Source: Hydrolagus colliei
Lineage: Eukaryota
DNA length: 64,000 nucleotides
Reading direction: 5' to 3'
Assembly: GCA_035084275.1 (NCBI GenBank)
Contig: CM068761.1
Span: 8,742,001 to 8,806,000, forward strand
Shown here: piece after piece, positions 4,624-32,846 of the stretch
How the letters are laid out: each line of letters opens with the position of its first letter
Numbering within the stretch: the first letter of the stretch is position 1
Position numbers and translations under genes: made by a program
The notes under the pieces: generated by a model
Seen by the model: only the letters and a program-made list of their open reading frames with translations
What the model was told of the DNA's origin: nothing
Database searches by the model: none

Positions 4624-4672
4624 ATGGGCGATTGGTTCCGAGTTCTGGCCGCTTTGCTCCTGTGTCTGCATG
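4624..4672 (+). CDS. IGL: Ig lambda-like (type II) light chain cluster 1, leader exon (MGDWFRVLAALLLCLH-G)
   Basis: ATG at 4624, hydrophobic signal peptide, phase-1 donor G|GTAAG at 4673. Confidence 0.93.
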
Positions 4673-4724
4673 GTAAGCGCTGCGGAATCCGCACTGATCT
4701 CAATTACAATGATTGTGTACAGTT

Positions 4725-4788
4725 CTATAATGTGACCTATCTACAGTGTGACCTCTCTACAGTGTGACCTATCTACAGTGTGACTTAT
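4725..4788 (+). repeat. 16-bp tandem repeat (CTACAGTGTGACCTAT) x4 in the leader intron
   Basis: Units start at 4725, 4741, 4757 and 4773. Confidence 0.9.
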
Positions 4789-4810
4789 CTGTGACTTGTT
4801 ATTTCTCCAG

Positions 4811-5161
4811 GAACAACCGCAGCTGTTACCCTGACTCAGCCACCGTCCATCTCAACCTCCCCGGGAAACACCGTCAAGATCACCTGTACCATGTCCGGAG
4901 AAGATATCGACAGCTACCTCGTGAGCTGGTACCAGCAGAAGCCTGGCAGCGCCCCTGTGTTTGTTTGGGATGAGAACGGCAACAAAGGTCAGGGGATTCC
5001 TGATCGATTCGCCGGTTCTGTGGACTCATCGAGCAACCGCATGGATCTAACCATCAGCGGTGTGCAGCCGGAGGACGCCGCCGATTATTACTGTGGTGCC
5101 GGGTATACCAACAGTCCATATAACGTCTTGTTCGGTAAAGGGACCAGGCTGAGTTTGCGAA
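4811..5161 (+). CDS. IGL: IgL cluster 1, germline-joined VJ exon
   Basis: Acceptor tttctccag at 4810. Open frame [11 protein letters not shown]...KITC...WYQQKPG...DYYC-GAGYTNSPYNVL-FGKGTRLSLR; donor A|GTAAGT at 5162; no heptamer/nonamer between V and J. Confidence 0.95.
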
Positions 5162-5769
5162 GTAAGTGATCTTTGACATTGTATACTTTGCAGGGGATTG
5201 TTTCGACTTTTCGATGGCTATTTTTTTCTGGTTCTACTTCAAAGTAACACATGAATATTTGTATCCTTCACGGTATGTTTTCATAATCTTATGCCCACAA
5301 GCTTCTGAATTTAAAAAAATTATGTGGAGATCTGATATTTTGAAGAAACAAACAACAACTTGCAATTATATTTCGCCCTTCACGCGGGACAGTTTGATGT
5401 TTATCCCTGAAGAGTTTGATTAATTGAATTTTTTTATTTCGAGAATGAAATAATATTTCGGGTAAAACAAATATGCGAATCCTGAGTTTAATTGACAATT
5501 TCTGATGAATTAAGGCGAACTGTGTAGGAAATTAGCAAAAGCTGAAACGTGGAGGAACCAACTACATTAGTCACGCAGAGTTAAATGGTACAGTATACTG
5601 AAAGACCGAATATCCGAGATCCACTGCACTGCCATCTAGAGATCCTGGTAAATAATGAGCGACAAGGAAAGGAGATAACAGTTTCATACCTGGTGCCAGG
5701 ATAAGTCATTTACATGGATAAGTCATTTTTTTCTTCCCGGAGTCTGTACGCATGAGATGATATTTAAAA

Positions 5770-6030
5770 GCGAGACACTTGGGTTCAATTGCCGGCAGGA
5801 TGAAACCTTGGGCAACTTTCCTTACTTCACACACCTAATAATAATCCGTCCACGAAAATAATAATAAATTGGTCATTTCAATTCACGGCTGCTTGTGGGA
5901 CACTGCTGTGTGGGATTGGCTGCCGCGTTTTGCCACAAATATAAAATAATTCACAACAGAATATTCTGTGAAGCGCTTTGAGATGTCCAGAATAAGTGAA
6001 AAGCGCTGAATCAAATGCAAAGATTATTAT
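5770..6030 (+). mobile_element. Short tRNA-derived SINE with Deu-type 3' part, in the J-C intron
   Basis: gggttcaattgcc B-box-like; tgtgggacactgctgtgtgggattggctgccgcg core; gaagcgctttgagatgtcc tail. Confidence 0.6.
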
Positions 6031-7448
6031 TATTTTTGAGAACCTTCAGCACAGATAGATGAACAGCTTTCCATAGGGTGACTCTCCCTGGACTCTAATG
6101 CTCTAATTGGTGAGCGGTTCAAATTTCAGAGGGAACCAGATACCGAGGAAATGTTTCTGGTTTGTAAATAATTTCATATTTGAAGAATTTCGACTTCCAA
6201 GAAACCAAGTATTCCAAGAATTTCGACTTCCAAGAAACTCTTCAATTGATATCCAGACAACTGAACATAACCGTAAGAGAGGTTTATCTGACAATTATTT
6301 CATATTAATATCTAATCCATTATTGTTTGAATAATTGAAATGCTATAATCGGCTCAGTGAGTGAAAATGTATTTTTATACTATTTAGACTTGTGTAATTT
6401 AGACACTGTTATTTCTCCCATTAATAGGAGACTCCATATTATTCTTTTCCCGCAGAATTATATTCGAATTTCTGCTTGTTTAAAATGTTTTATTTTCTCC
6501 CAATTCCGTGTTTGATATCAGTGAGGGGAACACCATTGCAATTAGAAGCAGAGACTCAACAATGTTACTTGTGTTTTACCGCAAGTTGGCTGTAGTGGCA
6601 GGTGTCTGAGTGAAGACACAGACTGAGGAGCAGCTTCATTTGGTCAAAGCAAAAATGAACGTACGAAGAAAAACGTTATGTAACTGGTGTAAATGTAATA
6701 TGTTTATTTCCTATAGAATATGGATCGCTATTTATAAATACAATCCAACATAATTCAAGCAATAAAACATTGTGAAATTGGCAGTAATTCTCTTCAGCTG
6801 CTGAAATTTTTATGTAATTGTGCTTCTCAGGTGCTTTGTACATTTTCTTTCATACAGCGTTTGAGAAAAGCGAGCCTTCTCTTTTACCCCGAGATGTTCA
6901 CGTTTTTAACACCTGCCGCTCTTGCTTGTAAAATATTGTTGGTCGAAAAGGCGGTTATTTTTTTAATTGGACGATAAAGGAATGTGCGAGTTTTATCCGT
7001 TCTCTTCCTTGGGAATGATCTTCGTCAAAGATATAATTACTGTAATAATCAAAAGTGTTAATGCGTCTTCAATCTTTGGCTCATTTGCCATATTCCTTGT
7101 AGCATTTAAATATTTAGCGTCTGGAATCTTTTCTGATTATTGCGGTGTTTATCTTCTTAAATGTATTTGTGTCAAACTACTGATGCTATAATAAGATACA
7201 GAGTATGTGGTGAGCAAACCTTACCAACACTAATCACTTCACATTGATTTCATATCTTTTTACGCGGGAATTGTCATTGCTCAACATTATTGCGGACAAG
7301 AAAAGACTGCATGATATGTTTTTCAGTAATAATGTGAAACGTGTTGCGTAGATCCTTTGAACAAGGACATTATGATTCAGTATATTTAATATTTAGTTTT
7401 CAACTGATCTTCGGTCATCAAATAATGAACATTATCCTTTCCTTCCAG

Positions 7449-7771
7449 ACCCACGGGCCCCTTCGGTGACTGTCCTTCCGCCGCCACCAGAACAAATCAC
7501 AGCGAAGAGCAAGGCGACCCTGGTGTGTCTGGTGAATGATTTTACCCCGGGAGCTGTGGAGGTCAAGTGGACTGTGGATGGCAGTGCCAGAAGTGAAGGT
7601 GTTGAAACGAGTGCGATCAAGCAGGAGGTGGACAACACGTACAGTGTGAGCAGTTATCTGACTCTGCCAGCCTCCGAGTGGGAGTCACACGAGCTGTATT
7701 CCTGTCTGGTCAAACACGAGGCTCGGGGGACTCCGCTTAAAACAACCATCGCTAGATCCAGTTGTATCTAA
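7449..7771 (+). CDS. IGL: IgL cluster 1, constant exon
   Basis: Acceptor ccttccag at 7448. 323-nt exon encoding a C1-set Ig domain (ATLVCLV, VKWTVDG, YSVSSYL, YSCLVKHE) with C-terminal SSCI*. Spliced product is 240 aa. Confidence 0.95.
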
Positions 7772-8207
7772 ATCGGGAATGCGTAGCTCAACTCGCAATT
7801 ATTTCATTTTAGCCAACCTACCTTCAATAATAATGAAAATTTGTTTTTTAATATTTTGTAGATGGTTTTGCGTCATACACTTCCCAAACAGCTAACAATT
7901 AATATGCAGTTCATATCGTTTGCTGGAATCCATAGGTTCAATTCTAAGTGTTCGGACAACCATAAAATATATTTGCATTGTCCTTTGTGCGTCGCTCATT
8001 TACTTCCAGATTTTCTTTCTTTTAGTCAAACAATGAGGTTTTCATCTTATTTGTATTATTCAGCACATGGGTAAAACATAAAGCAGCGTCCATTTTTATG
8101 GACTTGGTTTACAGACGTGCAATCTAGCGGAGAAAATATTACACTGGTGATAAATCATAGCAACAAGTGAGCAGGAATTGAATATTTCCCTGTATGTTAT
8201 TTTAAAA

Positions 8208-8499
8208 ATAATCCTTACATTTGACATAGCACTTTTCAAGGCTTCTAGACATCTCAAAGTGCTTCATAGAATATACTGTAAAGTGAATTGACTGTGTATT
8301 TGCGGTCGAAACGTGGCAGCCAATTGCGCACAGCAGTGTCCCACAAACAGTAGTGAATTGAAATGACCAATTTATTATAGTTTTTTAGGAGGACGGCTTA
8401 TTATTAGGGGTGTGGAATAAGAAAACTTGCCCTGATCTGCCTGAATTCGAAACACAGGTCTCACGCTTGTAAGGCGAGTACTCTAACCATTGAGCTACA
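8208..8499 (-). mobile_element. Short tRNA-derived Deu-type SINE
   Basis: Reverse strand head gtagctcaatggttagagtactcgccttacaagcgtgagacctgtgtttcgaattc; same family as 62810-63112. Confidence 0.7.
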
Positions 8500-9105
8500 C
8501 TATTCAATTTTAGCTTTCTATTGTACCCTACTGAGTGTAATACCCATCACTCCAAACCAGTTAGAGATTGTAAGATCGTTTTGTGTTAAACTTTATTATT
8601 ATCTGGATTCGGACGAAAGGAGGGCGGATGTTGAATCCATTCTTCATTTGCAAGTCGTTTTTCTGCGTTTTTTTTTTTTAAAAGAGCCAACTTTCCAATT
8701 AAACCTGAAATTATTTTCTTCACAATTCTGCAGAAATTTAAATGTCATGACAAAATGCTGGACGTCTGCTGTTTGATTCTGACTTCCGCCTCGCAACAGC
8801 TTGGCTGATTTATTAATATCAGCAGATATCGCTGTATCAACTGATCAAAGTTGTATGTGTGTTTCACTACTTCTTCCCCTTTCATTACAAACTACAACAC
8901 ACCACCAATCAAATGCCATCTTTGCCAATCGCACGCCTTGGCTGAGTGCCAAAGGCATACTTCTTTCATTGTTACTCTATTAGAGAGGCCACATACACAC
9001 ACTAAAACATTTGACTTCACATATATCAATAAAACGTAATCAACATGTGTAATCTTATCCAACACATTTTCCTGGAAATAATGACATGGTATTGATAAGG
9101 TATTG

Positions 9106-11202
9106 CAGGGCCGTACGCAGGATTTTTTTTGGGGGGGTGCGAATTGCTAGTGATGGGACCAACAATGGTCGGCGGTTTGCGGGCTGCCCCCGAAGCCCCC
9201 TCGAGGCTCCGACGTTTTACACAGTTTGAGGTCTTATTTAATCGATTCAGAAGATCTAATATGAACGGTAAATGTTTCATGCCCTTGGTGTTTAAGAGCA
9301 TCATTATTTATTCAGTGTTTATATTTTCCCCGGTAGTCCGTGTCTAATTGGGAAGGTCGAATGTGTTCGCCGATAAAAGCCAACACGACTGTTGACTCGA
9401 TGATGTAAGGAATGCGAACGATAAAGTAAATTACAATCCAATTAACACAGTACAATGACGAATGCTTGATAAATGTATGCGTATAGAGAAAATGATCATA
9501 AACTACAGATTGACGGTAATTAATAAGTTGTTCTGCATTGTTATCCTAAGACTAAATTTCTTTCGGACTGTAATGAACAATAATGTAAGAGTAAAGTATG
9601 AATTATGTGCTCAGATATTCCAGCAAAGCAAATTTTATAAAAGACAAGAAAATATACAGAAACTGAAAATCAGTGTCAAACAGTTAATTCACACGTGTTA
9701 CAAGCCTGTTATCAGCATTATCCTGAAAATATCGTTGAACTGTGAGCAATAGTGTAGTTAGTTTTTATTTATTTATTTAGAATCAAAATTAAAGGAAGTG
9801 ACCCATCAAGCAATACTGATCTGACGAAAAAATACTTGAAAAAATAAGGGAGGGGAAATTAATTCTTTAATAGCGTTCCGTATTCGAGACGCCTCGGTCG
9901 CTTTGAAGCCAATACGTCAACCGCTCTACCAATATCGATTTCCATATTATAATGAATGTGCATTAAGGCGAGGGCTGAAAGTCGCTCCTATACGGAGCAG
10001 AATGCTGGACAGTTAGGCAAACCTCGACCAGGAGATTAGGTGACTCGTGAGGTTTATACCAGGCTTCTAAGAGACGCCCTGAACGTTTACTGGCGACAGC
10101 ATCAGACAAATAGTGAGCTATATGGTACACTACCACACTGGTATCACAGACATTACTGCAGAGGCGTCTTAGGTTTAGCGGACATAGCTGGAGAAGCCGG
10201 GAGGAAACTGTCCATAGTGCTATGGACAATGCCAGAGTTCGCTCGATCAGCTTTTTTTATGCCAAATTCGTGCGACATTGATGTTTTTTCACTCTGGGTA
10301 CAAAACTGAAAGTGAAATAAAGTAGCACTGTTTACTTTGCGGCCATATGTTTTTTGCACGCCAGTGGACGTCTCTAAAAGCAATTTTTAATTACCGGAAT
10401 ACATTTTTAATAATATAAATCAAATGTGATAATCAAGACAAAACAAGAAACGTGATATTTCAGAAACACGCCTATCAAAACTTAAGTCATTTTTACTTAC
10501 ATTTATCAGATTAAAATACGATTTCAGCTTCCACAAAGTGGTGCTACCTTTTTATGTAGTGACTGTATACGGGATGATTTCCGATTGACACACCACGTAG
10601 AATAGGCGCTAAAGCCTAGGTCTATGTCCATGAGTATCTTTTTTTAAAGATAGGCATTCCCGTCCAGACACATATAACATTCTTGTTGGGTTCTCAAAAG
10701 CTTTAAGTTCTCAGAAGCTTGTAAATATGTTGTCATTGTTTGCTAGCATTACAGTCACACCTCTCAACACTTGAGTAATTTTTACTTACGGTGATCAGAT
10801 GAAAAGATGATTTAACTTCCAGTAGTGGTGCTGCCCCTTGTGGCTGTTTACGGGATGATTTCCAAACGAGGATGGGTTTGAGTCTTGGCGCCCATGTTTA
10901 TGCAGTCACGAGTCACAGACTCGCCGCGTCATGGACTGGTCTATCCACGCGGTATGTTTTGGGGTAGACGCCGATTCTGGTGTGCGACTCGATAATTTTA
11001 TATTAATACTAAATCATTCAAAGATGTGTATTTATAATTTATACATAGTTTTGAAGAACTGATTGTTACACAAATGTTCAATAAATTTACTTGGTATTTA
11101 AATTTGATAAAAAATACAATTCTCTACCCCGGAAAATGTGGACCTTTTATAATTTGGGGGGGTGCGTACGCACCCGTCGCACCCCCCCTGCGTACGGCCT
11201 TG
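9106..11202. mobile_element. Non-autonomous TIR DNA transposon (hAT-like termini), copy 1
   Basis: Left end CAGGGCCGTACGCAGG, right end CCTGCGTACGGCCTTG (15/16 inverted match). Near-identical second copy at 41614-44247. No transposase ORF; flanks (aggtattg / cagttact) are not a TSD. Confidence 0.85.
10050..10222 (+). mobile_element. RTE-clade LINE ORF2 C-terminal fragment inside the DNA transposon
   Basis: YTRLLRDALNVYWRQHQTNSELYGTLP followed, after a frameshift, by LVSQTLLQRRLRFSGHSWRSREE, resembling RTE motifs RMLRxxLNISWxxHxTNxELY and RRLRFAGHxxR. Confidence 0.65.
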
Positions 11203-13265
11203 CAGTTACTGTATACAAAATTAATTCATCGTCATCCACCGTCTGCAGATTCTGGTAATGAATGAACTGCCACAGTGAAAGCAAGTACCGGTAACAGTTT
11301 CATACCTGGAATTGAAGAAGAGCTCTCTAGTGCCAGAATATTTAATTAATATGTTTAATCACAATCTTTTCAGCGGCGTCCTCCTGAAGTGAAAGGCGCT
11401 ATACCACTGTAATTTTGTTTTGTGAGTTTCTTGTATGAGATTCTCCAGCAACTTCTGTTTATGTTTCAGATTCCCAGCATCTGTAGTATATTGTAATTTC
11501 GTTTTGTTGTTTTCCTCGGTTTGTAAGCAGAGGTGATGTTTAACCGATCCTTCAGCACAGGAAAATAAACAGCAACTTTCCACAGGGTGAGTCTCCCTCG
11601 GCTCCAATAGGTGAGAGTTTCAGATCTTAGAGGGAACTGGATATTGGGGACATGTTTCTGTTCTGTAACTACTTGGATGTTTGAAGAAGTTAAACTTCCA
11701 AGAGACCTCGTAAATCTCTTCAACTGCTGCTCAGATGACGGAAGAACTCCGAGAGGTTTCTCTGAGCTTTATTTGACATCAACTTTTCATCCTCTATTTT
11801 AGGATAATTAAAATATGATAGTCGGCTTCGTGAGTGAATGTGTATTTTGGTACAATTTAGACTTGAGCAATGAACTACTGCATAATTCGCGACATTAATA
11901 ATCATCCATGTGTTATTTTTTCAGGTAGAGTTGTATTCCTGTTTCTGCTTCTTTAAATGCTTTATTTTCTCCCAATATCGTGGTTGATGTCACCGAGGAG
12001 AATACAATTGCAATTTGCAGCAGTGATTCAATAATGCCACCTGTGTTTCACCGCAAGTTGCTGTAAGTGATCGATGTGAATCAGTGAAGACACAGGCTGA
12101 GCAGCGGTTCAATCTCTCAAACCAGAAATAAAAGCACCACGAAATATAATACATATTGTAGATATTAAAGATTATTATTTCGCGTAGATATTGCAGCGAT
12201 ATTTATTGTAAATACAATACAATATATTTCATGGGCCCAATAAAACTTTGTGAATCACTATTTTAAGTTTCTAAAATTTAGTAAATGTGCGTCTCATATA
12301 TTTTGACATTTCCTTCCTACAGCATTTCAGGAAAGTGAACCCTCAGGTTTTCACTGGATTGTCCGGTTTTTATTGCCTGTTGCTGATGTCTACAAAACAT
12401 TGTGTGTCGAAACGGTGATTTATTTTGATAGGAGAGGGCGAAAACTTTATGGATTTGCAATGAACCCGATCAGGTCTAACTGCTAATCTTCAAATCGATT
12501 CGTTACCAATATCATCATTAATATTCTGGTTCTATTTATAAATAGTTGGTTGTATTTCGCAGTGTATTGAACCAGGGGTTTGTACACAAACCACTTTCCC
12601 ATTCTGGTACTTTTAATTCTCTTTCTCCCACGTTACTTCCCCCCAAATATACAATCAATTCACTTCATCGTACTTTCGCGTGAGTTGCTGTGAGACATCT
12701 TGAAAACTTGATACGGCGTTCTTGCAAATGAAAGAATTCATGTTATTATCATCGAGCTGTAAATGGTCAATGATACAGGCACTATACAATTGTAAATTGT
12801 TGTTATCTAGATCTACTTAGAGTTTGGTGAACTCCGTCACAGTTCAGCAGTAAATTAGTGGAGATTCAATCCAGTTTCGCCCCGACTGAGAATTCTGCAA
12901 ACTCTAAAATTATTCAACCTTTGACAAATATCTTCTCTAGATTGGCCATAGTTGCAAAGTGTCAGTTATTTGCAATCATGTTTGATTCTCTTTTGCGAAT
13001 GAGCTTCTTCAGAGATTCAATTAATAATCTAAACTTGTTACAGTTGGTTCAATCAAAAAAGCGCCAGAACCATATTAACTGTGTGTGACATGATATTTGA
13101 TGGTTGTGGTCATTTCTGATCAGTTAAATGTTTTCGTGAGAATCGACAGATGATATAGTAGGCTATGGGGTGTGTTGCGAGGAAAATATTTCATGTTTTG
13201 TTTTGAATTGTCGTTCGGGTCATCAAATAATGGACATTATCTGAAGATAAAATCTTTATTTCCAG

Positions 13266-13588
13266 ACCCACGGGCCCCTTCGGTGACTGTCCTTCCGCCG
13301 TCACCAGATTAAATCACAGCAAAGCGCAAGGCGACCCTGGTGTGTCTGGTGAATGATTTTACCCCGGGAGCTGTGGAGGTCAAGTGGACTGTGGATGGCA
13401 GTGCCAGAAGTGAAGGTGTTGAAACGAGTGCGATCAAGCAGGAGGTGGACAACACGTACAGTGTGAGCAGTTATCTGACTCTGCCAGCCTCCGAGTGGGA
13501 GACACACGAGCTGTATTCCTGTCTGGTCACACACGAGACTCGGGGGACTCCGCTGGAAAAACCCATCGCCAGATCCAGTTGTTCCTAA
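13266..13588 (+). pseudogene. IGL: Orphan IgL constant exon (pseudo-C) lacking leader and VJ
   Basis: Intact acceptor (tttccag, 13265) and 323-nt exon, but CAA(Gln) is TAA at 13310-13312. No leader or VJ between C1 (7771) and this exon. Confidence 0.92.
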
Positions 13589-14759
13589 TCAAGAATGTGC
13601 AGCGCTGGTCGAATGTACTATTTGCAATGTACTTTTAATGATTATTATTCTGTTTTCAAATATTTGTTGATTACGTTTGTTTTATCAAATATTTTCCCAA
13701 ATGACTAACATTGCAAGCAAAAACTTAAATTGCCAAATTCTGTAAATTTCCCGACTGAAGGGAAGGCATCCTTTAGATTTGTTTGAAGTATTTAAACTAG
13801 TAATAATGAATACACGGTTCACATCGTTTGCCTAAATCCTTAGGTTGGATTCCACATCCTTGTGTCATGTTACACAAATACCGAAAAATAATAAAAAGTC
13901 TCTGCATTCTCCTCTGTACAGTCACTCGATTTCTTCCAGATTTTCTTCACGATTGTTCAAACCAACCGATTTTTATCTTAGTTTTATTATTCGGTAAATC
14001 AACATAAGCAATGATCGTTGATGGAATTGCTTCACAGATATGTTTAAACGAGGATATGTTACACTAGAAGCAATTCGTAGCAACAAGGGAACAACAGGTT
14101 TGGTTCTCTGTTGTGGGATCCAGAGGATTTCAGCTTCAAAATCTCACCTGGTGTCAACTTGTAAGATAACTACATTTTAAACTTTGGATTATCTGGAGGG
14201 AATTCAATCTGAATTTGACTGTGTCTTTCCGTATTTATTGATTTGTTTTAAACCCAATTAAGACCCAATTCTGATGACGTTTCGCATGTTACGACAAAAC
14301 TGGTGGATATCGTCTTTCATGTTGGCTGTTCGGAAATGTTTGGTTCTAACATCCGCCTGGCAACTGTTGCTGCTTATGAACATCAGCAGGTGTCGCTGCA
14401 TCAACCGATTAAAATTGCATGTGTGTGTTCCACTAGTGTTGCAAACTACAGCATTGCTAGCATTATATACGCAATGTTGTAGGTCATTATTCAGTGCAAT
14501 ATAATATTAAAGATCGGATTATTTAAGTTGTAAATGAAGCCCAGAAACAACAGGTCTGCAGCAACATCCATATGTATAATTGTCCAAGGCCAATCCAAGC
14601 AGATTAAGTGCTTTGTGACTACATTACGGGAAAAGCGCTATACAAAACGCAAGGATTATTCTTATTATCCATACATCAGACTTAATATTTTTCTTTGAAA
14701 GAGATAAAACATTACTAGCGTTACATACGCAATTTTGATAATAAATTACGAATAATGTA

Positions 14760-15075
14760 GTAGTAGTTTATTTGGTGGACTCCTGTAACTTGACCTACAT
14801 GTGAGATACACGGATTTAATTCCAGCCAGGGTGAAACATTAGGCCTGTTTCCTGAACTCAGCCGACAACAAATAATCCATCCAAAGAGTAAAAATAAATA
14901 ATAATAAGAAATCAGTCATTTCAATCCATAACTATTTGTGGGAATCTGCTGTGCACAATTAGCTGCCGTGTTGCGCCACAAAATATACAGACAATTCACT
15001 TTACAGTGTAGTCTGTGAAATACATTGAGCCATCTAGCATACATGAACAGCGGTAGATGAAATACAAATATTTAT
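14760..15075 (+). mobile_element. Short Deu-type SINE, paralogous to 37525-37830
   Basis: tttgtgggaatctgctgtgcacaattagctgccgtg core with a degenerate tRNA-like head. Confidence 0.6.
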
Positions 15076-15639
15076 TTTACTATTGTTACTATTTTGCGAG
15101 AATATAAATATAAATCCATTATATCCCGCAACGCATTTTGAATGACGCCCACAGAGGAAGTTTGTCAATCAACTAGAATGTTGGCTAATCCCACACCTTG
15201 GCTAAATGCCAAAGACAAGTTTTTGTCATTCTTACTCTAACCAATTAGAAAGGCCACAAACACTAATTGGAATGTTTAACTTCACGAGCAGATATATATC
15301 AATGAAACTTAACCAATTTATGTATGGTTTAATCTTGAACATCTTACTTTCTTGGAAATAATCACATGGTATTGATATAGAAATACATCAACACATGGAG
15401 CATGCTAATGTATCCATTCAAATTAAACTTTGATGTGTAAATAGTTTAGCAGATTAGCACATTAATCTTAATGAAGATCTGAACATTGAAAGTAATAAAG
15501 ACCATAAACTGCCATCGTGGCAGGAAGGCATGGTGTGTTTGGGGATGGGGAAGAGATGTAAGGGAGGACAATGTAGCCAAATGGATATTTACGATTTTTG
15601 AGCTGAAGAAGTCTAGGACTTTTTCGTACTTTTAAATGT

Positions 15640-17000
15640 GATTTATCAGCATTTGCCGGTGGACCGTGAGGCCAGATTTGAGCCAGGTGCGTTCAACTGC
15701 TCTCGCTTGGCTTTTGAGGGAACGGAGGTGAGTTGTGTACCACGGTGATGATCGGGAATGGGAGACGGTTTTGGAGGTGAAGGGGGCCAGGGTGTCGACG
15801 GTAGTGGAGAGGGTATTGTGGAGGGCGGTGGAGGCGGAGGATGGGTGGGTGCAAATGAAGTGCCATTGTGGGTAGAGATCGTAGGTTTCTAGGGCAGAGG
15901 TGAAACTTTGAGGGGGAATCTTCTTCCAGGGCCGGTAGAAGATGGTGGTCGGTTTGGAGGTGGAGGGGGGAGGGATAGAGGTGTTGCAGGAAATGAAAGA
16001 ATGGTCGGAAATCGCCTTGTCTGTGATGGTGACGCCAGAGACGTTGAGGCCTCGGGTGATCACCAGATCGAGCGGATGGCCGTTGGGTGTGGATGGCAGT
16101 GTTAATATGAAGGGAGAAGTTGAAAGACGAAAGTAAAGAGGAAAATTCAAAGGAAATGGGGCAGGAGGGGGTGAAATGGAGGTTGAAATCGCCAAGAATA
16201 ATAAGGCGATCAGAGGAGGCGCAAAGGGAGGTTAAAAGTGAAGAAAAATCTGAAATGAAAGTGGGGGAGGGTTTGGGGGGGCGATAAACTATAAAATTTT
16301 GAAAGAATGGTGGGAGGAGTGAGAAAGGGTGAGCTGTTCAAAAGAGGGGAAGGAGCCGGAGGAGTAGGGGGATACGGCGAGGGATGACTTTGAAATGAGG
16401 GCCACGCCACCGCCACGACAGTTGGATCGAGGAGCACGGTGGAATGTATAGTTGGGTGGTGTGGCTTCAACAAGGGGGAAAGTGTCGCCTGGGGTCATGC
16501 AAGTCTCCGTCAGGGCCATCATGTCAACGTTCTCATCAAGGACGAGATCGTTGATGGCCAGGGTCTTGTTGCACACAGAGCGGACATTTTGGGGGCCGAT
16601 GCGGAAACAGCCGAGGGGTGTGAGGGGGGGACTGGGATGGTCGGTGGGGAAGGTGGGGATCTGAATAAGGGAAGAGAGGTTAACCCCCCGGGTTTGTGTC
16701 CGGTGGGGCTGGTGGTGATGGTGGGGTACAGGGCACTTGGTGTGGCTGCTATTGGACAACCAACGCCGAGTGCCACGGTAAGCCCGACGGAGGATTCCAA
16801 TACTGGAACAGAGGGAAGCGGTGGGAGGGTCGAGCAGGGACAGTAGGCGAGGGGGGCTAAGAGAAAGAAGGGTAAAGAAGGAATAAGGAAGAGGGGGGGT
16901 TGGGGGGAAAAACTTGAGGAGGGGGAGGGAAGCTCGGGTCATGGCGGCAGCCATATTGCGCACGTGGGAGACCAGGAGCGAGGGTCAATGGGGCGGCATC
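15640..17000 (-). mobile_element. L2-clade LINE, apurinic endonuclease region, degenerate
   Basis: Translations QNVRSVCNK, DMMALTETCM, RGGGVALI, GHPLDLVITRG and ISDHSFI are APE endonuclease motifs (ORFs 16289-16963 and 15632-16195). Confidence 0.8.
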
Positions 17001-17913
17001 ATCCCAAGGCATGTGAGGCCGCGGCTGGGGGATGCAGAGGCGCTGCAGTCTGGAGCCTGGCCAGGGCTGAGACCGAGGCTGGGGTTGTGGTTAGGGAAGG
17101 TGGTAGACAAAAATAATTTTCAGTGGCAGAGAGGGATGGCAGAGAGTGAGGTGCTCAAAAGAGTGCAAGCAGCCAGAGGAATAGCAGAAAGTCCAAGTGA
17201 AGCTTTGGATATGGATATGATATCAGGGCGATGCTCAAGTCGGGGCAGCAGCCAAAACGTGCATGCAGAGCCGGGAAGCAAGCAATCAGTGGGATGGCAT
17301 CAGCATGCATGGTACGTGGTCATGGCTAAGATGTGAGTGACAAGGTCTGCCATGACATTTTCTCCTTACCCACTTTCACTACATAATAGTTTTAGCTGCC
17401 ACGTTTTGCCCACAAATCTCGTGAATTCACTGTATATATGTGGGAGACAACACACTGTCCTTCTGTAGGTTGAATAACATAAACCTGTTTCCTATTCTAT
17501 ATCGCATCATCTAATAGGTGTCAGGAACATGTCCAGAACATCAGAACAAAACGCAAATTACTGAAGCTGCAGCTGCTGAAAGCGAAACGGCAGACGCTGG
17601 GAACACTTTGCTGATCAGGTAGCATCTATGGAGAAAATAAAATGCGTCATTGTTTCGGGTGCATGACCCTTCATCAGTCCCCAACTCAGAACTCTGTGAT
17701 CCCAGCGATGTCTGTCTGTCTTCCAGAAGATCGGAATTGCGTATTTATGATTTGATACCATCGCACCTCTGTTACCTAGGAGGAAATATGACTTACAGCT
17801 GTTAATGTTTCATCTGAAAAAACTAATGTGTCACAGTGCATAGCGGTAATGGGCAGGACATTGCAATTCATTGTTGTTTACTTAAGCATGCTGAGGGGAA
17901 CATTCATTAAAAG

Positions 17914-18790
17914 ATAAGAACATAAGCATTAGGAGCAGGAGTAAGCCATTTAGCCCTTCGAGTCTGTTCCGCCATTCAATAAGATCATGGCTGATCGTCT
18001 CATCTATCTCTGATTACCTGCCCTATCCCCATACCCCTAATCTCCCTATTTTTCAAAAATCTATCAGTCTCAGCCTTGAAAATGTTCAACGACTGAGCAT
18101 CTATAACCATATGGGGTAATGAATTCCATAAATTCACTGCCCTCTGAGTGAAGAAATGTTTCCTCAACTCTCTTCTGAAAGGGTGACCCTTAATTTTAAG
18201 ACTGTGAAACCTGGCTATAGATTCTCCTACAAGGGGAAACAATCCCTCACTGTCTACTTTATCTTGCCCTTTAAGAATCTTATATGTTTCAATAAGATCC
18301 CCTCTAATTCTTCTGTACTCTGGAAAATACAGCCCTGGTTTATTCAACCTATCCTTATAGTCCCCTCAGTCCCCTCATCCCAGGAACTAACCTAGTGAAT
18401 CTACACTGCACCCCCTCTAAGGCAAGTATGTCATTTTTTAAATACGGAGACCAAAACTGTATATAATACTCTATGTGGAGTATCACCAAAACACTGCACA
18501 GTTGCAGCAAGACTTACCTACTCTTGCACTCTAAACCTTTTGAAATGAACGCTAGCCTTCTTAGTTGCTTAGTCGCCTTCTTAGTTGCTTCCTGCGCCTG
18601 CAAACTAACTTTTTGGGACTCGTTTACAAGGACACCCAAATTCCTTTGAACACTAATACTATCTAACTTCTCCCCATGTAGAAAATAATCTATTGTTTAA
18701 TCTTGCTACCTAGGTGAATAATGTCACACTTGCTGACATTGAATTCCATCTGCCACCTACTTGCCCACTCCCCTAGCCCATCTATATCTC
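17914..18790 (-). mobile_element. CR1 LINE 3' fragment
   Basis: ORF 18000-18347 has RRIRGDLIETYKIL...FFTQRAVNLWNSLP; tail ataagaacataag at about 17914. Confidence 0.85.
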
Positions 18791-19982
18791 CTGTAGCCTA
18801 TCTATACCAAGATATTGATAGTGAGGTCGGATCAGAGGTTGTGGAGGGCAGGGCATATTGGGATTGAAGCGTTTTACGATGCGTATAGAAGAAATCAAGG
18901 GAGGGAGTGAACAGAGGTAGGAAGGAACAAGGCCGTAGGGAACTTTGAAGTCGACGTTGAGAATTTTTGACTTTTGCCTCTGTGAGATGTGGAGCAAATG
19001 TTGAGGAAATGGAGCGGAGCGATGGTGGGGGTTAACAGGTTCATCCAGAGAAAAATATCCCGCATGCAGGAAGGCAAAGTAGGAGTCAAGAAAATCCCAG
19101 TATGAGAGTAGGATCGGACCTGAAAACTGTGCGATGGTAACTTGGACAGTTCATATTGTGAAATATCTATAAACCGTACCCATATTTTGAAGGTGGTGGG
19201 CGTCGCTTGAAAAGTGTGGCTTTCTGTGCGGATCTGCAGCAGATCAAATGTAGCAAGTCAGTCTGCCAACTGTAACTGCAAATGTTCTTTGTCCCTCGCT
19301 TATCCGGTTATTAGCCAACCGAGGGTTATCAAAAAACAGCCGGGCTTATTCTGCTGATTGGCCAGAAGTCGACAAAATGCAGAAACAATTATCCCACATC
19401 AGAAAAAACTCCCCAACATTGACATTCCCTGTGAACTTGGGCAAGTGGTCTTCCGGGATTCACACACTGAAAAGCACACTGTTAATATTTAATGGGATCC
19501 AGCATTTCCAGGGTCCTGTAAATAATTGTTTGTTGTGTGAATACTATTAATGGTAATAATCCTTGCCTATGATAAGGTGCGTTACAATGTCTTCTGGACG
19601 TTTCAAAGCTGTCAATTGAACTCTTGTACATTTTCTGGGCGACTCAAGGCAGCCGATGTCACTCTGCAGAGTCCTAGATACAATGTTGGATAGAGAAACT
19701 ACAGTATATTTTGAAAATTTGACAACTTTATAACCTGCCAGTGATTCCGCCCAGATCCTATGCTTCCGAGACTACTCCTCTAACAACTTTGCTGGAGGAC
19801 GCCATGTACCTTCAGTTTACATTAAATACTTTGTTTCTTACTGGAAATAAAATGATTTGATCAATCAAACTCTTCAGGGAGAAACGTTATATAATATTAT
19901 CATGCAATATCTTTTGAAATATGGGCATTAAAATGCCTGAAATCTGCATGATATTCCGTTTACTGCTGAGAGCAAGTTTACT

Positions 19983-20048
19983 ATTGGACAATGCAACCCG
20001 GGGGATGATTTGCATAATCTATCAATTCAACTAAATTTGCATCACCTG
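19983..20048 (+). promoter_or_regulatory. IgL cluster 2 promoter: ATTGG 19983-19987, octamers ATTTGCAT 20008-20015 and 20035-20042, E-box 20043-20048
   Basis: Two perfect octamers starting 27 bp apart, upstream of ATG 20143. Confidence 0.87.
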
Positions 20049-20142
20049 ATGGTTCTTAAGGAGAAGTTTGGATCAAACACTGATGTGGCTTTTGTCTGGA
20101 AAATCCCTCATCTCTCTTCAGATCTTCGTCAAACTGTTCACA

Positions 20143-20191
20143 ATGGGCGATTGGCTCCGAGTTCTGGCCGCTTTGCTCCTTTGTCTACATG
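20143..20191 (+). CDS. IGL: IgL cluster 2, leader exon (MGDWLRVLAALLLCLH-G)
   Basis: ATG 20143; donor GTAAG at 20192. Confidence 0.93.
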
Positions 20192-20247
20192 GTAAGCGCT
20201 GCGGAATCCGCACTGATCTCAATTAGCTTCACTTTGTACAGTTAGTT

Positions 20248-20295
20248 CTACAGTGTGACCTATCTACAGTGTGACTTATCTACAGTGTGACTTAT
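20248..20295 (+). repeat. 16-bp leader-intron repeat x3
   Basis: CTACAGTGTGAC(C/T)TAT units at 20248, 20264 and 20280. Confidence 0.9.
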
Positions 20296-20317
20296 CTGTG
20301 ACTTGTTATTTCTCCAG

Positions 20318-20665
20318 GAACAACCGCAGCTGTTACCCTGACTCAGCCACCGTCCATCTCAACCTCCCCGGGAAACACCGTCAAGATCACCTGTACCATG
20401 TCCGGAGGCAGCATCGGCAGCTACTACACGAGCTGGTACCAGCAGAAGCCTGGCAGCGCCCCTGTGCTTGTTTGGCGTGATTATGACTCCACCAGAGGTC
20501 AGGGGATTCCTGATCGATTCACTGGTTCTACGGGATCATCGGACATGCATTTGACCATCAGGGGTCTGCAGCCGGAGGACGCGGCTGATTATTACTGTGG
20601 TGCTGGTTTGCGCAGCAGTCCGTATACCTTCGTGTTCGGTAAAGGGACCAAACTGAATTTGAAAA
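20318..20665 (+). CDS. IGL: IgL cluster 2, germline-joined VJ exon
   Basis: Acceptor at 20317. Open frame ...[25 protein letters not shown]; donor GTAAGT at 20666; no RSS. Confidence 0.95.
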
Positions 20666-23414
20666 GTAAGTGATTTTTGCGATTCTACATTGACTGTGAA
20701 GTGGGGAGTCTCGGGTTTACAATAATTATTTTGACCTGGTTCTTTGTGATTCATTTTACAATATAAATGTTTAGCTGCCTTACCCTCGCTCTGTGTTTAA
20801 TTCTGTTATACAATATTCCTGTTATGTTTGCATTGAGCAGTAATCTTCGGAATGGTAAGTGATTTATTTACGTGGTATTCGGATATTCTGAATTCAGAAA
20901 CACGTGAACCCTGAGTTTCATTAAGAATCTCTAAAGAATTAAGGATATTGCAGGAAACAAGCAATGGCAAAATAACAGCAATAAAATTGTATTTATAGAG
21001 TGCATTTCACATCGAGAGGAATTCCAAAGGCGCCTAGCAGACAGGGGTCAGGACACCAGAATGTGGGGGAGGGGGGGAATAGTGTGTGGGGTGTTGGCTG
21101 GGTGCGGTGTGGGGAGAGCAGGGATGAGGGAGAGCAGAGGTGTAAGACTGAGGCTGATGGTTTAGTCGAGGAGCAGCATCATCAGTTTGAATTTGAAGGA
21201 GGCAAGATAGGAAGCCAGGCGAAGTAATTCTGGGCAAAAAAACGTAGACGAATGAATTAATCAAGAGCACAACAACTACAAAATTACATTTCTATGGCGC
21301 ATGTCGCGTCGAGCGCGGAGCATAATGGTGGTTAAATTTACTTTAACATTGTGTCTATTGAAGGACTGAATATATAAGATTCAATAATCCACCGTCTGGA
21401 GATTCTTGTAATGAATGAACTGCTCCAGTGAAACCAGGTAACAGTTTCACGTCTGGAATCGAGCTTTCGAGTGCCAGATTAATGAATTCATATGTTTAAT
21501 CACCCCGGTTTGTAAGCATGAGGTCATGTATAGCCAAACATCTATTAAACAAGTAACTACTTTTGATGCTTGAAGCATTTAAACTTCCAAGTGACCTAGT
21601 AACTCTCTTCAACTGCTGGTCAGATGACAGAACAACTCTGATAGGTTTCTTTTAGTATTATTTGACATTAGCTTATCCTCCATTATTTTGGGATGATCAA
21701 AATGTTATAGTCGGCTTAGTAGCTTGTATCTTGGTGTAATGTAGACTCGTGCAATGAACCACTGTGTTATTCCCACCATTAATAGTCGTCCATGTGTTAT
21801 TTTTTCAGGTAGAGCTTTATTCCTATTTCTGCTTCTTTAAAATGTTTTATTTGCTCCCAATACCGTGGTTGATGTCACTGAGGGATTCACCATTGCAATT
21901 GGCAACAGAGACTAAGTCACGTCAAATTTGTTTCAGCATACATTGCTGTAAATCAATCTGAATCAGCGCAAAGTGAAGATACAGGCTGAGCAGCGGGTCA
22001 ATCTGTTCAAAACAGAAATAAAGCACTAAGAAATATAAAACATATTGTGGATATTGAAGATGTTTATTTCCCATAGACAGTGCCGCGATATTGATTATAA
22101 ACACAATGCACAATAGAGAGCACAATAAAGAGACCAATACAACTTTGTGAAATTGGCAATCACTTTCTTCAGCTGCTAAAATTTAGTCAGTGTGCTTCTC
22201 AACTGCTCCATATTATGACTTTTCCTTCATACAGCATTTGAGTAAAGTGAACCATATGGTTTTTACCCCGAATTTTCACGTTTGTTTAATCATCTGTAGC
22301 CGTAAAACATTAAGGGTCGAAACGGTGATTTTGTTTGAGAAGAGAGGATGCAGGAATTTGCGGATTTAGAATGATCCCGATCCAATGTCACTGCTAAGCT
22401 GGCGTCTTCAAACCGACTAGTTACAAATATGATTGTTGTTATTGTGGTTGTATTTATAAATAGCTGGTTGCATTTCGTGGTGTATTGAATCAGGGCTTTA
22501 TGCACAAACTGTTTTCCGATACTGTTACTTTTAATTCTCTTTCTCCCGCGTTTGTTCCCCAAAATATACAATCAATTCACTTCACATTGTGTGAATTGCT
22601 GTGAGACGTCTCGAAGTCTTGTTCTAAAAATGAAAGGATTATCGTCATTATCATCGAGCTGTAAATGGTCAATGTGAAAGGCACCTTACATTTGTAAATT
22701 ATTGTGATGTAGAGCTATTTGGTGTTTGCTGCAGTCCGTCACAGCTCAGCCTTACGGTAATAGGAAATTTAATCCAGATTCCTACGGACAAACAATTCTT
22801 TAAACTCACAAAGCTATTCAAAGGTTGACACATTTCTTCCGATAAGCCATAGTTGCAAAGGATTCATTTTTGCTTCTTCGCTTTGAATGAGCTTCGTCAG
22901 AAATACCATTAATAATCAAAACGTTTTCCTGCCCTTTCAATCAATATGACGCCCAGATCATATTTCCTGTGACACAGTTAATGTTTGGTGTCGATTCTGA
23001 CGATGGCAGTCTTTATTTGTTAAATGCGTTTGTGAGAATCTACAGATGATATAATAAACTAGTGTGTGTTTGGTGAGAAACACAGGTGAGCATTTAACCT
23101 CATGCTCCTTAAAGTCTCTTCACATTGGTTTGATATCTTTATAGCAGGACAGAGTCACTGTTAAATATTTTCGGCAACAGACAAGAAAACGTGGGTAAAT
23201 GTGTTATTAAGTAGTAATGATGTGATTTGTTTTGTAGATCGGTTGAACGAGGGTATTATGAGTAAAACCTTTTGCTAAACACTCTAAAACGGCGTTTGGC
23301 ACGGAGAGCGCTATATAAATCCCATTTGTTGCTTTCATAGCTATTTCATTTTCAACTGTCTTTCGGATTATCGAATAATGGACATTATCTGAATATACAA
23401 TCCTTTAATTCCAG

Positions 23415-23737
23415 ACCCACGGGCCCCTTCGGTGACTGTCCTTCCGCCGTCACCAGATCAAATCACAGCAAAGAGCAAGGCGACCCTGGTGTGTCTGGTG
23501 AATGATTTTAACCCGGGAGCTGTGGAGGTCAAGTGGACTGTGGATGGCAGTGCCAGAAGTGAAGGTGTTGAAACGAGTGCGATCAAGCAGGAGGTGGACA
23601 ACACGTACAGTGTGAGCAGTTATCTGACTCTGCCAGCCTCCGAGTGGGAGTCACACGAGCTGTATTCCTGTCTGGTCAAACACGAGACTCGGGGGACTCC
23701 GCTGGAAAAAACCATCGCCAGATCCAGTTGTTCCTAA
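23415..23737 (+). CDS. IGL: IgL cluster 2, constant exon
   Basis: Acceptor attccag at 23414; 323-nt open C1-set domain ending SSCS*. Spliced product is 239 aa. Confidence 0.95.
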
Positions 23738-24362: not shown

Positions 24363-24653
24363 NNNNNNNNNNNNNNNNNNNNNNNNNNNNNNNNNNNNNN
24401 NNNNNNNNNNNNNNNNNNNNNNNNNNNNNNNNNNNNNNNNNNNNNNNNNNNNNNNNNNNNNNNNNNNNNNNNNNNNNNNNNNNNNNNNNNNNNNNNNNNN
24501 NNNNNNNNNNNNNNNNNNNNNNNNNNNNNNNNNNNNNNNNNNNNNNNNNNNNNNNNNNNNNNNNNNNNNNNNNNNNNNNNNNNNNNNNNNNNNNNNNNNN
24601 NNNNNNNNNNNNNNNNNNNNNNNNNNNNNNNNNNNNNNNNNNNNNNNNNNNNN
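24363..24653. other. Assembly gap (291 N)
   Basis: Run of N. Confidence 0.99.
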
Positions 24654-25210: not shown

Positions 25211-26129
25211 TTTAAAAACTATTTAAAAGCTACTTTTCTAAGGATTGGATTATTTATTTGAAACCAAGAAACAACATGTTTTCACCAAATTCTACATGGT
25301 TGAGGTCAATCCATACTTCAGACTTCTTCCATTTATTATATAAAGCAAGCGTCAAACTAGATGAATTACACAGTATGCTGTGAAGTATACTGTACATCCA
25401 TTTGAAAAAAATTAAAATTTTGAGACGAGCTCCAGAAGAACACATGTCAATCCAATACTATTTTGGGCAAACCTACCTATTTGGCTGAGTGCCAAATACA
25501 GATTATTTTCATATTATTCTATCCATTAGAAAGGCCACACAAATATAATTAAACATTTAACTTCACAAACATATGTCAATTAAACTTAATCAACACGTAA
25601 AAATCTTGACGTATTTTCTTTGCGAAATAATCACATGGAATACTTCAGCAGATTGGAACACACTGACTAAGTATTTCCATATATATTATGCATTGACATA
25701 CACATACTTAAGCAGAATGTCAACAGAATGCAACCTAATGATATGAACAGTGAAGGTAATAAAGAAGTGAAGAATATGTTTTATAAGTAAAATAGATGAA
25801 AATTGAACTCAACAATTCATGTAAGGGGCATGCAGTCAGTGAAAGACCCTTTTCTGCAAAACCCAGTTCTTAAAACCACGAGTAAGAGCATAAAAAGTGA
25901 AAGTGACAAACATTTTGGAGTTCAGCCATCCTCACCCATGTCTCTCCCGCTTAGTGTGGGTCACATCACTCAGGCACACGATAAGGCCAGCATCCAGGTT
26001 TCCCTATTCCTATCAGTCAGTTTCAGCATGTCTCATATACACAGCGTCAAGAATAGCAACATGAAAAATAGATCTGTATTGCACAATGTGCCAAGACGCT
26101 GCTCAGACAGTATTTCAGTATCTCCAAGC

Positions 26130-28329: not shown

Positions 28330-29421
28330 GACGATCACATCAGAAATAGAAGAAAGCACTGCTGGTGAGGGACTGGATGTGTGGTAGAAAGAATAATTGG
28401 TGGTCGAACTTGACGGCTAGGTTAGGTACGGGTTCAGAGAATTTAAGTGGCAGGTCAGGTAGGTGGAAACGTTGAGAACTGTGCAATTAATGATGCTAAC
28501 AAGAGCAAAATTGTATGGATTCAAACTTGTTAACATTTAGCTGAAGGAAATTCCTTCTCATCCAGCTCCTGATTTTTAATAGGCAGGCTGACCGAATATC
28601 AGGTGATTGGGGGTCGCAAAGTGAAGTGGAAAAATAGAGATAGGTGTCATACACATATGGAAATGTCCCCCATGTCTGCGGATGAGATACCCAAGAGGGA
28701 GCATATAGATTAGGAAGAGGAGGGGGTCAAAGATGGATTCTGGGGGTAGCACGCAGGTAAACGGGTGAGATCAGGTGGAAAAGCTATTTGTGGAGATGTA
28801 CTGCTGGTGGTTTGTGATGTAGGACTCAAACCAGGTGAGGGCGGTCCCATTGCGATGGATGACAGATGACAGGGGGTGGAAGAGGATGTGGCAATCGACT
28901 GTGTCGAAAGCGGCAGAGAGGTCCGGGAGGACAAGGAGGTAGAGGGAGCCCCTGTCACAGGTAGAGAGGATGTCATTTGTGATGTTCACAAGCGCAGTCT
29001 CTGCACTGTGGGCAGGACGGAAACCAGATGCCATGACTTTGGCAGTGAAGTGCAAGTTTGGAATAGGGCCAAAGTGGCTTGGGATTGAGGGAGCTAGGGA
29101 AGATGTTTTGAGGATGGGAGTGATGGCAGCAGTTATGAGTGCGGCATGAACTGATCCTGAGGAGAGGGACAGATTGATGACATCAACCAGCAGTGGGCAG
29201 AAAAGGGGGAGCTGGGTGACCAGCAAAATGGTGGGAAGTGGGTCGAGGCAACAGGTGGTGGATTTCAGAGAAATGATGATGGATGAGAAAGGGGAAAGAG
29301 AGATGGGGAGGAAGGAATGTAGGATGGGGGTGTGGTAGAAGCTGATGATGGGGAGGGTGAGGGGAATGAAGAGGCGGTGATGTTGGGCAACAAAAGGCAA
29401 GAGCATGATGCTGCATGGCAA
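28330..29421 (-). mobile_element. L2 LINE reverse-transcriptase region, degenerate
   Basis: ORF 28771-29421: CCLDPLPT, GFRPAHSAETALVNITNDIL, DLSAAFDTVD, GTALTWFESY. Confidence 0.85.
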
Positions 29422-30619: not shown

Positions 30620-31470
30620 GACAAGAACATAAGAATTAGGAGCAGGAGTAAGCCATTTAGCCCTTCGAGTCTGTTCCGCCATTCAATAAGATCATGGCTG
30701 ATCGTCTCATCTAACTCTGATTACCTGCCCTATCCCCATACCCCTAATTTCCCTATTTTTCAAAAATCTATCTGTCTCAGCCTTGAAAATGTTCAACGAC
30801 TGAGCATCTATAACCATTTGGGGTAATGAGTTCCACAAATCCACTGCCCTCTGAGTGAAGAAATGTTTCCTCAACTCTCTTCTGAAAGGGTGACCCTTAA
30901 TTTTAAGACTGTGAAACCTGGCTATAGGTTCTCCTACCAATCTCTCAATATCTACTTTATCTTGCCATTTAATAACCTTATATGTTTCAATAAGATCCCA
31001 TCTAATCCTTCTGTACTCTGGAAAATACAGCCCTGGTTTATTCAACCTATCCTTATAGTCCCCTCATCCCAGGAACTAACCTAGTGAATCTACGCTGCAC
31101 CCCCTCTAAGGCAAGTGTGTCATTTTTTAATTAAGGAGCCCGAAACTGCATACAATACTCTAGGTGTGGTATCACCAAAGCTCTGTACAGTTGCAGCAAG
31201 ACTTCCCTACTCTTGCACTCTAAACCTTTTGAAATGAACGCTAGCATGCCGTTCGCCTTCTTAGTTGCTTGCTGCACCTGCAAACTAACTTTTTGGGACT
31301 CGTTTACAAGGACACCCAAATCCCTTTGAACACTGATACTATCTAACTTCTCCCCATGTAGAAAATAATCTATTGTTTTATTCTTGCTACCTAGGTGAAT
31401 AATTTCACACTTGCTGACATTGAATTCCATCTGCCACCTACTTACCCACTCCCCTAGCCTATCTATATCT
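30620..31470 (-). mobile_element. CR1 LINE 3' fragment, paralogue of 17914-18790
   Basis: ORFs 30707-31045 and 31131-31430 (MEFNVSKCEIIHLG, RDLGVLV, PHLEYCMQF); same flanking context as the 17914 copy. Confidence 0.85.
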
Positions 31471-32790: not shown

Positions 32791-32846
32791 GTAAGCGCTG
32801 CGGAATCCGCACTGATCTCAATTACCTTCACTTTGTACAGTTAGTT

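Follow-up and report, generated by a model that had tools for sequence, protein, structure and literature searches.

We analysed a 64,000-nt stretch of the genome of the chimaera Hydrolagus colliei (GenBank assembly GCA_035084275.1, contig CM068761.1, positions 8,742,001 to 8,806,000 of the forward strand; hereafter, the window), which is a lambda-like (type II) immunoglobulin light-chain (L-chain) array in cluster organisation, with variable (V) and joining (J) segments joined in the germline. Translation of the window revealed 4 fused VJ exons and 5 constant (C) exons. The VJ exons, ending at about 5161, 20665, 33280 and 47939, each run uninterrupted from framework 1 into a continuous YYC...FGKGT, with no recombination signal sequence (RSS) between V and J, and the C exons start at about 7449, 13266, 23415, 36014 and 50180. 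The C exon at 13266 (hereafter, the orphan C exon) lacks a VJ exon of its own, and upstream of it lies a transposable element with terminal inverted repeats (TIRs), of which a second copy is found elsewhere in the array. The features on which the analysis rests, given as coordinates, strand and description, are the following.

4624 to 7772, +: cluster A, intact; leader 4624-4672, VJ 4811-5161, C 7449-7772; spliced frame of 240 aa
7773 to 9097, +: 3' flank of the cluster A C exon, left side of the putative deletion junction; colinear with the other post-C regions
9098 to 9105, +: junction bases AGGTATTG, assigned with confidence to neither flank
9103 to 9108, +: left copy of the 6-bp direct repeat TTGCAG, overlapping the element end
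9106 to 11202, +: TIR element copy 1, non-autonomous, 2,097 bp, with hAT-like termini and 16-nt TIRs
11200 to 11205, +: right copy of the 6-bp direct repeat TTGCAG, overlapping the element end
11203 to 13265, +: what is left of the J-C intron of the apparently beheaded cluster, namely its 3' part of 2.06 kb; matches the paralogous introns
13266 to 13588, +: orphan C exon, a pseudogene; splice acceptor AG intact; 95-98% identity to the 4 other C exons
13310 to 13312, +: premature stop codon TAA; CAA in all four paralogs
13589 to 15653, +: 3' flank of the orphan C exon, matching the post-C paralogs; the array is normal from here into cluster B
20143 to 23737, +: cluster B, intact; leader 20143-20191, VJ 20318-20665, C 23415-23737; spliced frame of 239 aa
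32742 to 36336, +: cluster C, intact, with an open reading frame (ORF); the orphan is most closely related to its 3' half
41614 to 44247, +: TIR element copy 2, 2,634 bp long and located between clusters C and D; shares the TIRs of copy 1
47427 to 50502, +: cluster D, intact; ORF of 241 aa

Clusters A to D each consist of a leader, a VJ exon and a single C exon in an open spliced frame of 239-241 aa, so that the array, like the type II L-chain clusters of cartilaginous fish, is built of tandem L-VJ-C units with V and J fused in the germline. Sequence kinship agrees with this assignment. The best protein match of the cluster B product is a Hydrolagus colliei L chain (92% identity), and the same product is 77-80% identical to chains of Callorhinchus milii (elephant shark) and about 70% identical to shark 'lambda-1-like' chains. 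The C exon of cluster A carries a 1-nt insertion near its end (7765-7772), and its chain ends in ...SSCI versus ...SSCS elsewhere, the frame remaining open. The leader introns (4724-4790, 32846-32912 and 20245-20300) contain about 4 copies of a 16-bp tandem repeat, TGTGACCTATCTACAG, which includes TACAGTG, 1 base off the RSS heptamer. The window contains one run of Ns, at 24363-24653.

The DNA on the two sides of element copy 1 belongs to two different parts of the L-chain unit. On the left, positions 8906-9097 are homologous to DNA located about 1.8 kb downstream of the other C exons (15166-15377, 37917-38124 and 25481-25641), with 70-72% identity to the first two of these segments, and the homology runs through GGTATTGATA (...CATGGTATTGATA) to end at 9097. 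On the right, the sequence from about 11203-11234 onward matches the J-C introns of clusters B (from 21387), C (from 33972) and D (from 48182), at positions 0.69-0.72 kb below the respective J splice donors. In this part, 11234-11362 is 79% identical to intron B (21387-21503) and 81% identical to intron C (33972-34078), and with gaps the match can be traced back to the last base of the element. An earlier note on this DNA had placed the left side in the region 3' of a C exon and the right side about 0.7 kb inside a J-C intron, and the comparison with the paralogous clusters bears out both placements.

Further to the right, the orphan unit is most similar to cluster C. From 11510 onward the two align with 88% overall identity, in patches of 79-98% (11510-15399 versus 34266-38146); within this alignment, 13589-15399 differs from 36337-38146 by 9.3% substitutions. 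Positions 15393-15653 match 39830-40111. In total, the orphan intron and 3' flank diverge by 9-11% from cluster C and show only 69-70% identity to cluster A.

Cluster C is itself of mosaic structure: B-like (89-93%; 17075-21493 versus 29798-34078) in its upstream region, VJ exon and first 0.85 kb of intron, and orphan-like in the remaining intron, C exon and 3' flank, with patches reaching 97-98%. The switch point, at 34078-34266, is separated from the position homologous to the orphan junction by no more than about 100-300 bp, and rearrangements may be favoured in this part of the intron. In addition, the cluster C intron contains a small inverted repeat (34112-34129 and 34223-34240; 18 nt, 94% complementary, 93 nt apart), and the orphan segment 11436-11494 can be aligned to this cluster in either orientation, pointing to a local inverted duplication on the cluster C side. 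A further repeat of about 280 bp, probably a short interspersed element (SINE) or a miniature inverted-repeat transposable element (MITE), is located at 8203-8499 and is present in at least 7 copies in both orientations with 73-87% identity (5810-6032, 14895-15079, 37640-37791, 35412-35510, 62841-63112 and elsewhere).

On either side of the orphan junction, the array keeps its regular order. The series runs from cluster A through its 3' flank, a mid-intron, a C exon, a 3' flank and intergenic DNA to cluster B and onward, and the only irregularity is at 9097/9101, where a post-C region abuts the middle of an intron. The layout is most simply explained by a single deletion within a regular array, which, judging from the comparison with the complete units, would have removed the intergenic DNA, the promoter, the leader, the VJ exon and about 0.7 kb of the intron. 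The same landmarks are spaced 6.0 kb (15377 to ~21380) and 8.3 kb (25641 to ~33965) apart in two complete intervals and 10.1 kb (38124 to ~48180) in the third, which includes element copy 2; therefore, about 6-10 kb is missing. A homology search of the interval between 7772 and 13266 found no remnants of V, leader or promoter. Together with the count of five C versus four VJ exons, this upholds the earlier proposal that intergenic DNA, promoter, leader and VJ were lost.

The orphan C exon bears four private substitutions, all at first codon positions and all changing the amino acid: 13310 CAA>TAA (Q>stop), which confirms the stop codon reported earlier, 13325 AGC>CGC (S>R), 13502 TCA>ACA (S>T) and 13562 ACC>CCC (T>P). 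Private substitutions in the other C exons number 0 in cluster B, 2 in C, 3 in D and 6 in A. The changes in the orphan fit relaxed selection, although the numbers are small. The five C exons are 95-98% identical to each other versus 69-89% for their introns and flanks, and are thus being homogenised. Consequently, the few private changes give no date for the loss of the cluster, and dating from the C exon was rejected as unreliable. The suggestion that the C exon decayed after losing its VJ partner accordingly agrees with the one nonsense and three missense changes and gains no reliable clock from them; we infer that the deletion preceded the stop codon.

Copy 1 of the element has the extent given in the earlier note. 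Its TIRs, CAGGGCCGTACGCAGG and CAAGGCCGTACGCAGG (9106-9121 and 11187-11202), are 16 nt long with 1 mismatch. Copy 2 is located 32 kb away in the same orientation and is flanked by a clean 6-bp target-site duplication (TSD), CCTGGA, at 41608-41613 and 44248-44253, where the direct repeat had been noted; thus, the family transposes normally. The copies align in two blocks (9106-10222 and 10493-11202 in copy 1), with 96.7% and 95.2% identity and with 2.2% and 3.4% of sites differing, separated by a middle segment of 270 bp in copy 1 versus 830 bp in copy 2. No ORF exceeds 97 aa in copy 1 or 126 aa in either copy, and a Pfam search of the element ORFs gave no matches, so both copies are considered non-autonomous. 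The interior of the element (10025-10222; 42520-42800 in copy 2) encodes peptide stretches ...RRLRFSGHSWRS...HGHRTRGRPTLTY..., which resemble the conserved C-terminal tail of the ORF2 proteins of long interspersed elements (LINEs), although Pfam returned nothing for them. Since the LINE-like fragment continues in copy 2 where copy 1 has an internal replacement, copy 1 looks like a deleted derivative.

The window contains only four element termini, with no further copies or solo ends. A scan of metagenome contigs for the TIR returned 3 matches, all to the same bacterial coding sequence and attributable to chance, and a literature search for the TIR sequence found nothing. An exact-protein look-up of the ORFs crossing each element junction, and of an ORF related to glycoprotein Ib beta described below, gave no record in collections that do not include the genome of this species.

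The 16-nt TIRs start with CAGGG and CAAGG and are thus of the YARNG type, YARNG being the terminal motif of hAT transposons. The TIRs of hAT elements are 10-25 bp long (PMC3942097), and the name hAT6 is used for those hAT families whose TSDs are 6 bp long (PMC12730594). The element resembles the hAT6 group in the length and termini of its TIRs and, in copy 2, in the 6-bp TSD; copy 1 has no such repeat outside CAG...TTG, and TTGCAG overlaps its ends. Unlike hAT6 transposons, the two copies have no transposase ORF, so that the placement in the hAT superfamily, which relies on termini and TSD, is tentative. An 8-bp TSD of the hAT type is present in neither copy. The IS3EU superfamily, as characterised in fungal families, has 6-bp TSDs, TIRs longer than 30 bp and termini TAYGG..CCRTA (PMC12730594); assignment to IS3EU was rejected, the TSD length fitting but the termini being CAGGG..CCTTG and the TIR 16 nt.

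The exact ends of copy 1 can be drawn in two ways. With CAG...TTG as the ends, no repeat flanks copy 1, whereas copy 2 has its clean TSD. If they are drawn 3 nt further in, copy 1 becomes TTGCAG-GGCCGTACGCAGG...CCTGCGTACGGCC-TTGCAG, that is, a perfect 13-nt inverted repeat enclosed by a perfect 6-bp direct repeat. The description of copy 1 in the earlier note as lacking a TSD is therefore ambiguous, being correct for the outer ends and contradicted for the inner ones. The outer 3 nt are common to both copies, and CAGGG/CAAGG fits the hAT terminal motif, which suggests that these nucleotides are part of the element. The inner ends would give both copies 6-bp TSDs and would put the sole TIR mismatch outside the element; against them, copy 2 would have to be mobilised from the copy 1 locus together with 3 nt of flank on each side, and we know of no chemistry that predicts this. 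An inverted-repeat search extends the repeat of copy 1 to 18 nt (TGCAGGG...CCTTGCA), and the corresponding TG...CA ends were rejected, the extra bases not being present in copy 2.

The deletion has a single junction, situated 0-8 nt before the left end of the element. At the right end there is no breakpoint, since the intron homology on that side reaches the element end and may cross it. Hence, in alignments to the other clusters, the earlier idea that the breakpoints coincide with the TIRs is borne out only to within 0-8 nt at the left end and fails at the right. The junction is at most 8 nt from the left TIR, and given four element ends in 64 kb, chance alone would place it so close with a probability of about 1 in 1,000. 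The eight bases AGGTATTG match the post-C paralogs at 3 positions, against about 70% elsewhere, which at such divergence is not decisive. Seven of the eight repeat GGTATTG of 9088-9094, 11 nt upstream; empirically, a 7-mer recurs within 25 nt at 0.7-0.8% of window positions. The last five, TATTG, are identical to the paralogous introns directly to the left of the aligned insertion point, which read TATTG-AAG-GACTG in B and D and TATTC-AAA-GACTC in C, compared to TATTG-[element]-CAG-TTACTG in the orphan. In the AT-rich DNA of the window 5-nt matches are common, so the last of these similarities is suggestive only. A joint of this kind, with 3-8 bases belonging to neither side, is typical of end joining with templated filler. 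It is suggestive, at most, of a broken intron end TATTG that might have annealed to the TATTG in the cluster A flank, copied GG and then been joined.

The earlier note had attributed the loss either to transposase-mediated adjacent deletion or to recombination between two element copies, and neither cause is established by the junction, given the ambiguous TSD and the 3-8 filler bases at the left joint. An adjacent deletion would join the element end directly to a new flank and leave no matching TSD; here, 8 nt (or 3 nt) intervene, and TTGCAG overlaps both ends. Recombination between elements would leave the ancestral flanks intact up to the element, with half of a different TSD on each; this fits on the right, whereas the last 8 nt on the left show the poor match to the paralogs given above.

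We consider it slightly more likely than not that this DNA is what remains of a fifth germline-joined lambda-like cluster, in which the element was present in the intron first, a break occurred at or beside its left end, and the break was repaired by end joining. In this sequence of events, the element would have inserted into the J-C intron of a working cluster, and a later break at or beside its left end could have been caused by a transposase cut or by breakage at a structure-prone end. The DNA to the left of the break would then have been lost and the end rejoined to the 3' flank of cluster A with a short filler. Left without a V partner for splicing, the C exon would have been freed from selection and acquired CAA>TAA along with the three missense changes. 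We infer both the element-first order and the part of the element in the break; its causal role is likely but not proven. The link between element and deletion rests mainly on the closeness of the junction to the end of a young element, which favours some involvement. Furthermore, the orphan differs from cluster C by 9-11% and is only 69-70% identical to cluster A, whereas the element copies differ by 2.2-3.4%, indicating that the cluster is older than the activity of the element, consistent with insertion of the element into a cluster that was already there. The homology of the right flank up to the element end is as expected if the element is at its original intron site.

Deletions flanking cut-and-paste elements are produced by sister-chromatid transposition of maize Ac/Ds and by the Drosophila P element. 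As in those cases, copy 1 retains both ends at the edge of a multi-kb, one-sided deletion, and its flanks form no TSD if the ends are CAG...TTG. Unlike in those cases, where the element end is joined precisely to a new target, 3-8 bases intervene here, and TTGCAG allows the locus to be read as an ordinary insertion.

Several observations weigh against a break initiated at the element. TTGCAG on both sides of a perfect 13-nt TIR core allows copy 1 to be taken for an ordinary insertion, a coincidence expected by chance at about 2e-4 for the exact register and about 2-5e-3 if other registers are allowed, and two copies are too few to define the true termini of the element. If the TATTG match is real, 5 nt of intron survive to the left of the element, and the break was therefore not at the element end, where a transposase cut would have to place it. 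The small count of private changes in a homogenised C exon cannot date the loss, and the window does not show whether insertion or deletion came first.

In the strongest competitor, which we consider less likely but serious, the element would be a bystander. Under this account, an independent end-joining deletion, either between two breaks or from one break with long resection, and an ordinary intron insertion with the TSD TTGCAG came to lie 2-5 nt apart by chance or at a fragile spot, and copy 2 descends from copy 1, carrying its 3-nt flanks. The repeats at 9103-9108 and 11200-11205 enclose a perfect core with the sole TIR mismatch in the outer 3 nt, both copies have 6-bp TSDs in that reading, and the paralogous introns possess a single TATTG-AAG-GACTG where the orphan has TATTG-CAG...TTG-CAG-TTACTG. 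The position of the two copies, 32 kb apart in the same orientation, fits a local hop, and the same intron stretch has undergone other rearrangements, namely the B/C switch at 34078-34266 and the inverted repeat of cluster C. However, the element as bystander requires an insertion within a few nucleotides of an unrelated junction, with a chance of about 1e-3 to 2e-2, and the mobilisation of copy 2 with exactly 3 nt of flank per side falls outside any cut-and-paste chemistry known to us. The fit of CAGGG/CAAGG to the hAT motif, in turn, suggests that the outer 3 nt belong to the element, and the internal segments of 270 versus 830 bp look more like those of two deletion derivatives of a longer master than of parent and daughter.

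A decidedly improbable alternative is that two equally oriented copies of the element, located about 1.3 kb downstream of the cluster A C exon and in the intron of the next cluster, recombined, which would delete the DNA between them and leave a single hybrid copy. This is the standard route of repeat-mediated deletion, and in primates Alu or L1 recombination-mediated deletions arise by such ectopic recombination between repeats; the orphan junction is similar in that one repeat copy lies between unrelated flanks. Both TIRs are intact and the flanks do not match if the ends are CAG...TTG, and the second copy in the window demonstrates that several copies can occupy the array. Yet this route predicts an unbroken cluster A flank, whereas only 3 of the last 8 nt agree with the post-C paralogs, and these 8 nt duplicate a neighbouring 7-mer; the filler speaks against it because such recombination does not predict unmatched bases. 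Unlike in the Alu and L1 cases, the left flank does not continue cleanly into the element, and neither a second copy nor a footprint is found at the paralogous sites. An extra, unobserved insertion is required. In addition, the TTG/CAG coincidence at the ends is left without a reason.

That the junction is an assembly artefact, with two repeat copies or two clusters joined and a VJ-bearing segment dropped, is very unlikely. The tandem nature of the array, the 96% identical element copy 32 kb away and the run of Ns at 24363-24653 provide the conditions for such an error. However, the junction is situated 0-8 nt outside the repeat, in unique sequence, and copy 1 is distinguished by its own 270-bp internal segment as well as by private substitutions throughout. 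Moreover, the four private substitutions of the orphan C exon, including the stop, mark a locus of its own, and the flanks, 70-89% identical to the paralogs, are too diverged to be collapsed.

We assign a similarly low probability to the orphan having been born without a VJ exon, its C exon and half-intron having been copied in by partial duplication or unequal exchange, possibly mediated by the element. A tandem duplication from mid-intron to post-C would produce the same junction topology, and the mosaic structure of the array, with the B-like 5' half and the orphan-like 3' half of cluster C, is compatible with such exchange. Alternative transposition of hAT elements such as maize Ac can also yield tandem duplications with the element at the joint. 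Against this, complete and regular units follow from the orphan intron onward, and a single deletion is the shorter explanation. An element-mediated tandem duplication of the cluster A unit was considered as well and rejected: cluster A and the orphan share 69-70% identity versus about 97% for the element copies.

The least probable of the explanations, a germline deletion made by RAG through a cryptic signal with the element as a bystander, draws on a CATTGTG in the paralogous introns (reverse complement CACAATG, a heptamer 1 base off consensus) that ends 2 nt to the left of TATTG and on 3 extra bases at the joint, as in a coding joint, whereas the nonamer is poor and no cryptic RSS of the CAC..TG type occurs within 70 nt in the paralogs on the left side of the deletion. 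If true, cluster death would be a by-product of the germline recombinase that once fused V to J in this lineage.

Beyond the L-chain clusters, the window contains several other features. About 9 kb beyond the last cluster, a single-exon ORF of 193 aa (59524-60105, -) encodes a homologue of platelet glycoprotein Ib beta, matching PDB 8wfs chain c over its full length (E=8e-30), with weak Pfam matches to LRRNT and LRR_8. Human GP1BB and the lambda locus are both on 22q11, and the GP1BB-like gene next to the light-chain array may represent a conserved linkage. Upstream of this gene, at 58145-58444, G-rich units of about 28-32 bp (GGGGTGAGGGGGAGAGAGA...) are repeated in tandem. The intergenic DNA carries LINE fragments at 15632-16963, 28771-29421 and 53274-55820 (- strand), with an endonuclease domain (Exo_endo_phos, E=7e-7), a weak RVT_1 match and other ORFs resembling reverse transcriptase tails; these fragments account for the GC-rich, GC-skewed composition blocks.

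The antibody genes of cartilaginous fish are organised in many small independent clusters, whose birth and loss are known mostly from counts of pseudogenes with point defects. The mechanisms considered here, namely transposon-adjacent, repeat-mediated and end-joining deletion, are already standard, and the value of the locus is that of a documented example rather than of a new principle. The pseudogene members described in shark L-chain families have point defects, among them stop codons and faulty splice or RSS signals (PMC2193156), whereas the orphan in the Hydrolagus colliei array has lost the whole 5' half of its cluster, with only the C exon remaining. It would thus represent the structural death of one cluster with the junction preserved, the parts needed for expression gone and the C exon left to drift. 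Whole-cluster loss by deletion would accordingly occur within a live and otherwise intact array, with a young family of DNA transposons, active within that array, as a candidate cause.

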